Assembly (NCBI RefSeq): GCF_000143415.4
Contig: NW_003314268.1
Coordinates: 2,248,494-2,312,493 of the forward strand
Direction: 5' to 3'
Length of the DNA: 64,000 bases
Source of the DNA: Selaginella moellendorffii
Taxonomy: Eukaryota; Plantae; Lycopodiophyta
This document shows, piece by piece, positions 19,540-22,079 of this stretch. Under the pieces are notes generated by a model, which was given only the letters and a program-made list of their open reading frames with translations, had not been told where the DNA came from and made no database searches. Position numbers and translations under genes: made by a program. Each line of letters starts with the position of its first letter. Within the stretch, counting starts at the first letter, position 1.

Positions 19540-19783
19540 CATGCCCGATGTGCCACAACATCGTGTCGTGGAATTCCTTGACGATGGGGTACGTGCGGGA
19601 GGGGTGCTAGGTAAACGCTAGAACCTATTTCGCGGCTCTCATGAGAATTCCAAGAACAAGGAACATCAAGAGCTATATCCTAGAGAAGGGAATGGAATAA
19701 GATCACGGGCTCAAAGGTCACTGAATAGCTCCTACCTTTGTGGGGAATGCTTTGGTGAATTTGTATGCCAAGTGTGGAAGCAG
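19540..19783 (+). pseudogene. PLS-PPR gene fragment
   Basis: HNIVSWNSLTMGYVREG and TFVGNALVNLYAKCGS motifs in broken frames. Confidence 0.6.
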
Positions 19784-19805
19784 CAAATCTCTCTTCGTTC
19801 AAGAG

Positions 19806-20923
19806 CTACTTCTTCTTTTTGTCTTTCTTGGTCTCCTTTCTTCTCACTTTCTCGTCAGCGTATCGGATGCCTTTGCCTTTGTATGGCTCGGGCTTTCGCT
19901 TGGATCGAACGAGCGCCGCAAAGTTTCCGAGGAGCACATTGTCGCGCCCCGAGACTGTGATCTTGGTGTTCTCCTCCACCACCGCCGTGATCCCGTCGGG
20001 GATGGCCACCACCTCGGGCATTTTGAAGCCGATGTTGAGCAGCAGCTTGTTTCCCTGCACCACCGCTCGGTAGCCAACTCCGACCATGATCAGCTTCTTC
20101 TCGAATCCCTGTGAAACTCCCACCACCATGTTGCTCAGCAGCTGCCTGGAGAAATCAAAGAGAGAAAAATCAAAGATCGATGAAAAACAAGGAAACTAAA
20201 CTCTGAGAAACCACAACTCAAAACTACGAGGGAGAGAAAGTAATGCACACTGGAACAAACCAAACTAGAAGAAGAAAGGAAAAGAATGAGAATGTCGAGC
20301 TTACCGTGACAAACCGTGCATGGCTCGAGATTTCTTCGTCTCCATCACTCTCTTGAGGATGAGAGTATCGTTCTCCAGCGTGATGCGAACCTCGTCGCGG
20401 AACGTCCACGACAAGCTCCCCAGCGGGCCCGTGACTTCCACAAGCTGTCCATCGATTTTCACAGTGACTCCCTTTGGAACAGGCACTGGCTTCCTTCCGA
20501 TCTTGGACTCCTTCTCCAGGATCAGCGGATACTCTCGCTTGCCACCGAGGATAGCTTGCCGAAGCCCACTGCGATCCTAGAAAACATCTCCATCAGATTT
20601 TTCCTGGAGCGATCAAAGTGTTTCGTCTTTCACCTCTTTCGCAGGTAGCGCAAGCCCAGCTTGTTCATCAGCTTCTTCCCTTCCAGCAGGCTGCAAAAAT
20701 CCTCCACAAGGGCGCGGAGGGTCCAGTTCGTGGAGGAGTGGAACATTGCGCTGGCGAAGACGAGCTCCGGCGATCTACCATCCTCTGCTGGGGCTGCCGA
20801 AGATTCTTCCGATTTACCTGGCATTTCAATTGCGTCTGTGGGCGCAGTGCACATTGGGCGCACTGGGAACGCGTGCCGCGCCCATAATCTCCTGCGCAAG
20901 CACGCGCGCAACGCCATAGCCAT
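19806..20923 (-). CDS. RPL6: Organellar ribosomal protein uL6, plastid/bacterial-type two-domain core with long N-terminal extension
   Basis: ESKIGRKPVPVPKGV...GPLG...[34 protein letters not shown]...RKPEPYKGKGIRYADE. Introns about 20569-20633 (inferred to keep frame) and 20146-20324. Confidence 0.9.
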
Positions 20924-21669
20924 AAACCCTAAAACCCGAGGGTTTTATCATTTGTATTTGTATTTTGTTTAGTTTTCGTTAATTATAATTTAAACATGAC
21001 CTAAGCTAAGTAGGGCAAAACCTAGGGCAATGCACTTATCCCACTTGCCCAAGCGTTACCGCAGTTTATCTGTTTAAATAGTGTGGTGAATAAACAGTGG
21101 TTAACCTGTTGGGTTGTAGAGTATGCATCTGATGACCCGTCTGTGTGTCTCGAAGTCTAAGTCATATTCCGATCCAATAGGTTTTTGTAAGAAACGTATA
21201 CTTTTGTTTCGAGAGCTGCTTATTTCCGCCTCCTTATCTGCTCTTGGCACGCATTGCAACTCAAGGTTTTGATGATCCAAAGGAGTACATTTTGTACATG
21301 GGCGCCGTGCATGTATCGCTTCTGTAAGGTACGAGAAAACTCTCCAGTTGAGAGTTGCCACGTGGTTTTGTACATGTCTTCTAGAGATATTTCTTTGGTC
21401 CCGATCTTGTCAAAACCAGAAGTCTAGCAGAATTCGTATTAAACTTTTTGTAGTTTCATTGCGCTGCCAATTTTTGGAGCAGGTGCCATTGCCGTCACAA
21501 ATTACCCGATCGATGACAATTTCAAGTACATGATTTTGTCATTGCAATTCCAATGTGCAGCGCGGTTTACTTCCACAGCGAAGAAGAAAAAAAAAAAAAA
21601 AACAGAGAAACTTTTAGCTGGTCACCCGACATTCATTTTGTCACCGCTAGAATCGCGAGAGCTAAGCCT

Positions 21670-22079
21670 TCAAAACTTAAGTTTCTTCTGCCTGTGCTTC
21701 TCCTTTTTCAGCCTTCCTCTGCTCTTGCTCCTCTTCTTGATCGATTTCTTGGGCTTGAGAGACGACGACGCCATCATGTCCGTCTCCATTGCGCCACTGC
21801 CGCTCTTCTCCTGTTCCTCCACTTTCTCTTCTTCTATCTCTGCGGGAGAGAAACAAAACCCCAGAAATCCCCAGCTGTGAGCACAAGAGCTACAAAATGC
21901 GGTATAGACTCACCCATGGCGCTGCTCTCGCGGCGGCGCACCTCCACCTTGGGCGCCGCCATGGCCGCCTCGAGCGCCGCCTGCTTCTCTAGCTCCTTCT
22001 TCTCGAAGTGCGGCTCTGCAATCTCCCGCTTGATCGTCCTCAGTCGCATCTTGCGCTTGGATCGCAGCGACTTGGCCAT
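21670..22079 (-). CDS. LLP homolog (LLPH/LAPS18-like) small basic nucleolar protein
   Basis: MAKSLRSKRKMRLRTIKRE N-terminus, one intron, Lys-rich tail ending QKKLKF. Confidence 0.8.

Follow-up and report, generated by a model that had tools for sequence, protein, structure and literature searches.

A plastid-lineage uL6 gene with a replaced first exon in Selaginella moellendorffii, a candidate supplier of the mitochondrial ribosome

Results

Gene structure and transcripts of LOC9653068

The window analysed here is a 64,000-nucleotide stretch of S. moellendorffii nuclear DNA located on scaffold GL377572.1. A gene encoding ribosomal protein uL6 is found on its minus strand (19806-20923) and comprises three exons; the other allele is located on scaffold GL377601.1 (allele loci L002 and L003). 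Joining the exons (20634-20923, 20305-20568 and 19806-20145) gives an open reading frame of 894 nt for a protein of 297 amino acids, and both introns are of the GT..AG type. RefSeq contains the identical model, begun at the second ATG, as the "uncharacterized protein" LOC9653068 (P0121, 295 aa). An older GenBank entry, SELMODRAFT_6327 (P0001), covers a core of 171 amino acids alone. Eight codons upstream of the first ATG an in-frame TAA is present. No published report on LOC9653068 was found in the literature.

Spliced transcript contigs were obtained from four runs belonging to four studies, and their gaps correspond exactly to 65 nt (20569-20633) and 159 nt (20146-20304). The coordinates, the intron at 20569-20633 and the in-frame splicing of exon 1, all proposed from the genomic letters in the original prediction, are thereby confirmed. 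The contigs cover positions 19740 to 20933 and include letters specific to each of the two haplotypes. Read in the direction of transcription, exon 1 begins with 26 codons for a putative mitochondrial presequence (20846-20923, minus strand, as are all following parts of the gene), while the remainder of the exon (20634-20845) encodes an extension consisting of an acidic low-complexity part and a basic, partly helical stretch. Intron 1 (20569-20633) is inserted in phase 2 into a Ser codon (AG/T). Exon 2 (20305-20568) encodes a relic of a chloroplast uL6 (uL6c) transit peptide (SGLR...), the mature start KES-KIG and the N-terminal uL6 domain, as judged from profiles and gene structure. Intron 2 (20146-20304; 189 nt in the other allele) follows, also in phase 2, within the Arg codon of the motif MHGLSR. 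The C-terminal uL6 domain with the motifs GFKMP and PEPYKGKG, a Lys-rich tail and a TAG stop are encoded by exon 3 (19806-20145).

The 3' UTR extends at least over 19740-19805, with contigs ending at 19740-19753. Additional contigs were found over 19600-19782, where the assembly of the 3' end of the uL6 gene is interrupted at a 30-nt repeat of the PPR family. A short fragment of a PPR protein (...GNALVNLYAKCGS) is located on the plus strand at 19690-19782, antisense to the uL6 gene and in or beside its 3' UTR. RNA contigs match this fragment only over 19753-19782 and then run into typical PPR sequence of another locus; the transcript assemblies break at the uL6 3' end because the contigs cross there to the foreign PPR sequence. 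On the other side of the uL6 gene, a small gene is located on the minus strand (21670-22079; L003 1839-2248), the product of which has no Pfam match on record, is rich in Lys, Arg and Glu and is annotated with 111 amino acids (123 in the other allele).

The uL6 core

The product of LOC9653068 is a complete two-domain uL6 core of the bacterial type behind an N-terminal extension of approximately 115 residues. PF00347 is matched twice, with one domain per exon (45 bits for exon 2 and 68.6 bits for exon 3), and the bacterial profile TIGR03654 (L6_bact) is covered from position 1 to 66 by exon 2 and from position 70 to 175 by exon 3. The latter profile was scored piecewise (56.2 and 142.7 bits), while its cut-off of 168.55 refers to the whole protein. 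All the motifs on which the assignment as a full-length, chloroplast-like uL6 had been based are present.

A set of 257 bacterial and plastid uL6 sequences was used to define 46 near-invariant columns (at least 90% conserved), 42 of which are kept in LOC9653068. The four departures are R119K, S226K, H227M and K254N, with S226K and H227M together converting the near-invariant GFSHP into GFKMP, a change noticed from the start and verified here. The median number of departures at these 46 columns in plastid uL6c sequences is zero. In the AlphaFold model, residues from about 120 to 285 are predicted with pLDDT values above 90, while the extension has values of 37 to 54 and one short helix. Among the best 60 PDB matches listed, the uL6c proteins of the spinach and Chlamydomonas chlororibosomes ranked at the top (51-56% identity, TM-scores of 0.94-0.95), with a TM-score of 0.94 for spinach uL6c (5mmi_G). 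The first mitoribosomal protein among these 60 matches was that of Neurospora at rank 46 (30% identity).

Descent from the plastid lineage

A second, conserved plastid RPL6, the presence of which had been suggested as a check on the original prediction, is encoded in the same assembly. Annotated as "50S ribosomal protein L6, chloroplastic" (P0123, 225 aa, locus L001), this canonical uL6c has a classic Ser-rich transit peptide, and LOC9653068 is thus not the sole plastid-type RPL6 of this plant. The core of LOC9653068 and P0123 share 58% identity.

In a maximum-likelihood tree of 51 rows (LG+C20+F+G4), LOC9653068 was placed within a clade of 16 rows that otherwise consists of nuclear uL6c of green algae and land plants (support 98/92). 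Within this clade it appeared as sister of all land-plant uL6c with weak support (72/11) and on a long branch (0.63, compared to 0.25 for P0123). The alphaproteobacteria were found apart from it, beside the beta- and gammaproteobacteria. In a quick tree of 176 rows, LOC9653068 was nested among 46 plastid rows (SH-aLRT 88). The trees include cyanobacteria, alphaproteobacteria and other bacteria, with the alphaproteobacteria serving as a proxy in place of plant uL6m or jakobid rpl6. In neither tree did the nuclear uL6c of green plants group with cyanobacteria or Vampirovibrionales, the deep backbone being weak with about 180 columns. When sisterhood with Selaginella uL6c was forced, the likelihood dropped by 7.5 lnL (AU test, p = 0.066), and a forced clade with two alphaproteobacteria cost 29 lnL (p = 0.057), both tests being underpowered with 183 columns.

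The gene structure, a line of evidence that does not depend on the tree, is in accordance with descent from the plastid lineage. In the motif MHGL(S/F)R, intron 2 falls between the second and third base of the Arg codon, both in LOC9653068 (CG/G) and in the uL6c genes of S. moellendorffii (AG/A) and Populus (L084, AG/A). Likewise, intron 1 splits a Ser codon (AG/T) after the second base, followed by S/GLRQAILGG... in LOC9653068 and S/GLRSNFSGE... in S. moellendorffii uL6c; the Populus gene has S/NLRSVFLGE at this site in the same phase. In uL6c this intron lies inside the transit peptide, and downstream of it both Selaginella proteins reach the plant-specific mature start KES-S[RK]IG. Since LOC9653068 falls into the uL6c clade and both introns match in position and phase, these features, together with the KES-S[RK]IG motif, establish at the sequence level that it is a uL6c duplicate with a replaced exon 1. 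The duplication of a plastid RPL6 had been part of the original prediction. The SGLR match hints that the duplication took place in the Selaginella lineage, and the deeper position in the tree may be a long-branch effect.

Angiosperm matches of 106 amino acids were considered as short mitochondrial rpl6 and rejected. They are truncated last-exon predictions of uL6c, with GFSHP and the same C-terminus.

The leader and the orphan extension

The leader (residues 1-26) contains six Arg and neither Ser nor acidic residues, and its net charge is +6. In 40 complete uL6c precursors, the number of Arg ranged from 0 to 3 (mean 1.4) and that of Ser from 2 to 9 (mean 5.4), so that the leader of LOC9653068 is outside both ranges. 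It does not have the Ser/Thr-rich, Arg-poor composition of a chloroplast transit peptide, while by hydrophobic moment it is inseparable from transit peptides. An Arg-rich, Ser-free N-terminus followed by about 90 extra residues had been claimed for this protein, and the counts agree with this description.

The extension is divided by charge into an acidic part (residues 27-58, net -5) and a basic part (residues 59-115, net +5). A word search for its relatives returned the LOC9653068 protein alone, and a HMMER search against 1.84 billion representatives gave just two weak matches, both to repeat proteins. Residues 45-88 of P0121 are 27% identical over 44 residues to P0229 (453 aa) and P0228 (2687 aa), and this similarity recurs at every repeat unit. 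The two repeat proteins were rejected as homologues of the extension, the similarity being probably due to chance and inflated by repetition.

Among 5.8 billion clustered proteins, no orthologue of LOC9653068 was found in other species, with matches reaching at most 58% identity for the core and 67% for exon 3. The lack of orthologues in other species may reflect either a real absence or a gap in sampling.

Comparison of the two alleles

Across 215.7 synonymous and 675.3 nonsynonymous sites, ten coding differences were found between the two alleles, every one of them synonymous (P approx. 7e-7 for neutral evolution). Exon 1 accounts for four of the ten, again without a nonsynonymous change (P = 0.003), and all four fall within the part encoding the extension (20634-20845). 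The allele comparison indicates that the entire protein, extension included, is under purifying selection. The introns differ by five substitutions and a T-rich indel of 30 nt, the latter located in intron 2. Between the two haplotypes, the synonymous divergence (0.046) is higher than that of the introns (0.022).

Telo-boxes upstream of the start codon

Not more than 30 nt ahead of the ATG of LOC9653068, two inverted telo-boxes (AAACCCT; 20924-20930 on the plus and 20939-20945 on the minus strand) are located in a stretch (20924-20945) that belongs to the 5' UTR or the core promoter; both are kept in both alleles. At the uL6c gene, no telo-box was found within 1.5 kb of the ATG. Genes for mitochondrial and cytosolic ribosomal proteins, but not those for plastid ones, are enriched in telo-boxes near the start codon, and this holds for S. 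moellendorffii as well (PMC3212954). Against an argument from the telo-boxes, it has to be considered that such boxes are frequent in the window and also present at some non-ribosomal genes. The nine-mer telo-box AAACCCTAA occurs six times in the window (at 1823, 10380, 20924, 29718, 50734 and 57325), compared to 0.45 occurrences expected from shuffled sequences.

Discussion

A candidate subunit of the mitochondrial ribosome

The mtDNA of S. moellendorffii contains no rpl or rps gene (Hecht et al. 2011; PMC5654404), which upholds what the original prediction had stated and is consistent with PMC3325193. The mtDNAs of Huperzia, Marchantia and Physcomitrella still carry rpl6 (PMC3325193, PMC5654404). 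In seed plants, mitochondrial RPL6 is encoded by a nuclear gene and has 103 amino acids without a presequence (PMC2631504); the Arabidopsis uL6m is AT2G18400 (PMC6953067). Substitution of mitochondrial ribosomal protein genes by chloroplast-derived ones is described for rps13 and rpl10 in angiosperms (PMC2631504, PMC2818186). Two features of a substitution are found here as well: the plastid copy is retained in the same assembly, and according to the literature the mtDNA no longer contains the native gene. Since the canonical uL6c is retained, the demand of the plastid is already met. Taken together, the composition of the leader, the telo-boxes, the absence of the gene from the mtDNA, the retained uL6c and the precedents suggest that LOC9653068 probably supplies a role in the mitochondrial ribosome.

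In the most economical reconstruction, the nuclear gene for uL6c (RPL6) was duplicated, and its 10-codon exon 1, which encodes the first part of a Ser-rich transit peptide, was swapped for a new exon of 96 codons by way of the intron already present in the transit-peptide region. The new exon provided the Arg-rich leader together with the orphan extension, the leftover residues of the transit peptide were shortened and diverged, and the duplicate bears telo-boxes at its start. With its complete and well-folded core, the product most likely enters the mitochondria, where it would be processed and occupy the uL6 site of the large mitoribosomal subunit. In this position, it would fill a function no longer encoded by the mtDNA of S. 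moellendorffii, native rpl6 presumably having been lost. Extensions specific to the ribosome are common among mitoribosomal proteins, and the orphan extension is possibly one of these.

Alternatively, LOC9653068 might encode a second, divergent isoform of plastid uL6, the leader of which works as a transit peptide and which is needed for some plastid ribosomes only, or in certain tissues or under certain conditions. Its descent from uL6c would fit such an isoform, as would the proximity of its core to chlororibosomal uL6c among the best 60 PDB matches listed, and Arg-rich transit peptides exist. A leader with no Ser and six Arg is beyond the range of the 40 uL6c precursors, however, S226K, H227M and K254N do not occur as a set in any sampled plastid uL6c, and the telo-box promoter is unlike that of the uL6c gene, all of which makes a plastid isoform improbable. 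An arrangement that is also unlikely, if slightly less so, is the coexistence of LOC9653068, as a mitochondrial or dual-targeted uL6-like protein, with a surviving short nuclear rpl6, in which case it would be an addition, an assembly factor or an extra-ribosomal factor. A new function could be carried by an orphan extension of 115 residues under selection, and the 103-aa nuclear rpl6 has been retained in seed plants (PMC2631504). On the other hand, one uL6 site cannot hold two proteins, and the conservation of 42 of the 46 near-invariant positions together with the predicted full fold argues for an ordinary rRNA-binding role.

Two further possibilities are highly improbable in the light of the results described above. 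That LOC9653068 is a native mitochondrial uL6 of alphaproteobacterial lineage, moved from the mtDNA and merely plastid-like, is close to refuted, even though the AU test with the two alphaproteobacteria (p = 0.057) fell short of formal rejection. This tree is 29 lnL worse, the uL6c clade is supported with 98/92, and the gene has the KES motif, the relic SGLR and two introns whose positions and phases match those of uL6c genes. Moreover, native land-plant rpl6 encodes about 103 amino acids, and the Neurospora protein, the one mitoribosomal uL6 compared, is 30% identical. A decaying or functionless transcribed duplicate, as the long branch (0.63 versus 0.25) and the missing orthologues elsewhere might suggest, is effectively refuted by the allele comparison (ten synonymous and no nonsynonymous differences); in addition, the reading frame is uninterrupted, the transcripts from four studies are correctly spliced and the fold is predicted with confidence.

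Comparison with known substitutions and with native RPL6

If LOC9653068 does supply the mitochondrial ribosome, it would represent a further instance of the event known from rps13 and rpl10. The mitochondrial RPS13 of Arabidopsis (Adams et al. 2002, as described in PMC2631504) also goes back to the duplication of a nuclear gene whose product is a plastid ribosomal protein; it has received a different N-terminus, the plastid copy has been kept, and it is regarded as the substitute for a mitochondrial gene that was lost. As far as this description goes, the case of RPS13 differs in that it concerns the small subunit and angiosperms and that import was demonstrated by experiment, while LOC9653068 is known from sequence and transcripts. 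Unlike in RPS13, the replacement of an exon at a conserved intron of the transit-peptide region can be seen directly in LOC9653068. The substitution of rpl10 in Brassicaceae and monocots likewise leads from plastid to mitochondrion, concerns the large subunit and is accompanied by loss of the mtDNA gene; there, the chloroplast RPL10 is duplicated or dual-targeted, as supported by localisation assays (PMC2818186). In contrast to this, LOC9653068 is a dedicated paralogue, 42% diverged from uL6c and equipped with an orphan extension of 115 residues.

The S. moellendorffii uL6c gene has three exons, the intron positions and phases and the KES-S[RK]IG motif in common with LOC9653068. The two genes differ in exon 1 (10 codons and a Ser-rich transit peptide in uL6c compared to 96 codons and an Arg-rich leader), in the GFSHP motif, which is GFKMP in LOC9653068, and in the two telo-boxes, which uL6c does not have. 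Native mitochondrial RPL6, such as OsRpl6-1 and OsRpl6-2 of rice (103 aa, PMC2631504), AT2G18400 and the mitochondrially encoded proteins of Marchantia, Physcomitrella and Huperzia, has the same presumed destination and role. Compared by their descriptions, native RPL6 is a protein of about 103 amino acids of mitochondrial lineage without a presequence, whereas LOC9653068 encodes 297 amino acids with two domains of plastid lineage.

The mtDNA of S. moellendorffii is the most gene-poor plant mtDNA with respect to translation, lacking genes for ribosomal proteins, tRNAs and 5S rRNA. The rpl6 gene is missing from the mtDNA of Isoetes as well. The supply of the S. moellendorffii mitoribosome is largely unexplored, and for one of its subunits LOC9653068 is a candidate that is expressed and under constraint. 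If the proposed import holds true, substitutions of the rps13/rpl10 type would extend to lycophytes and to uL6, and the case would be a natural test of the interchangeability of plastid and mitochondrial ribosomal proteins. A more far-reaching and tentative proposal, to which we would assign a little less than an even chance, is that the Selaginella mitoribosome has been partly rebuilt from parts of the plastid lineage, and that, once the mtDNA had lost all its genes for ribosomal proteins, the truncated uL6m of land plants was discarded in favour of a full-length, two-domain, plastid-type uL6 with a new mitochondrion-specific extension of 90 residues. In that case, LOC9653068 would document this kind of substitution for the first time outside seed plants and for the first time in uL6, and it could be one among several cross-organelle swaps in the S. 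moellendorffii genome. The route is plainly visible at the locus itself, namely duplication of a gene for a plastid protein, replacement of its 5' exon at an intron that the transit-peptide region already had and a promoter of the type found at genes for mitochondrial and cytosolic ribosomal proteins.
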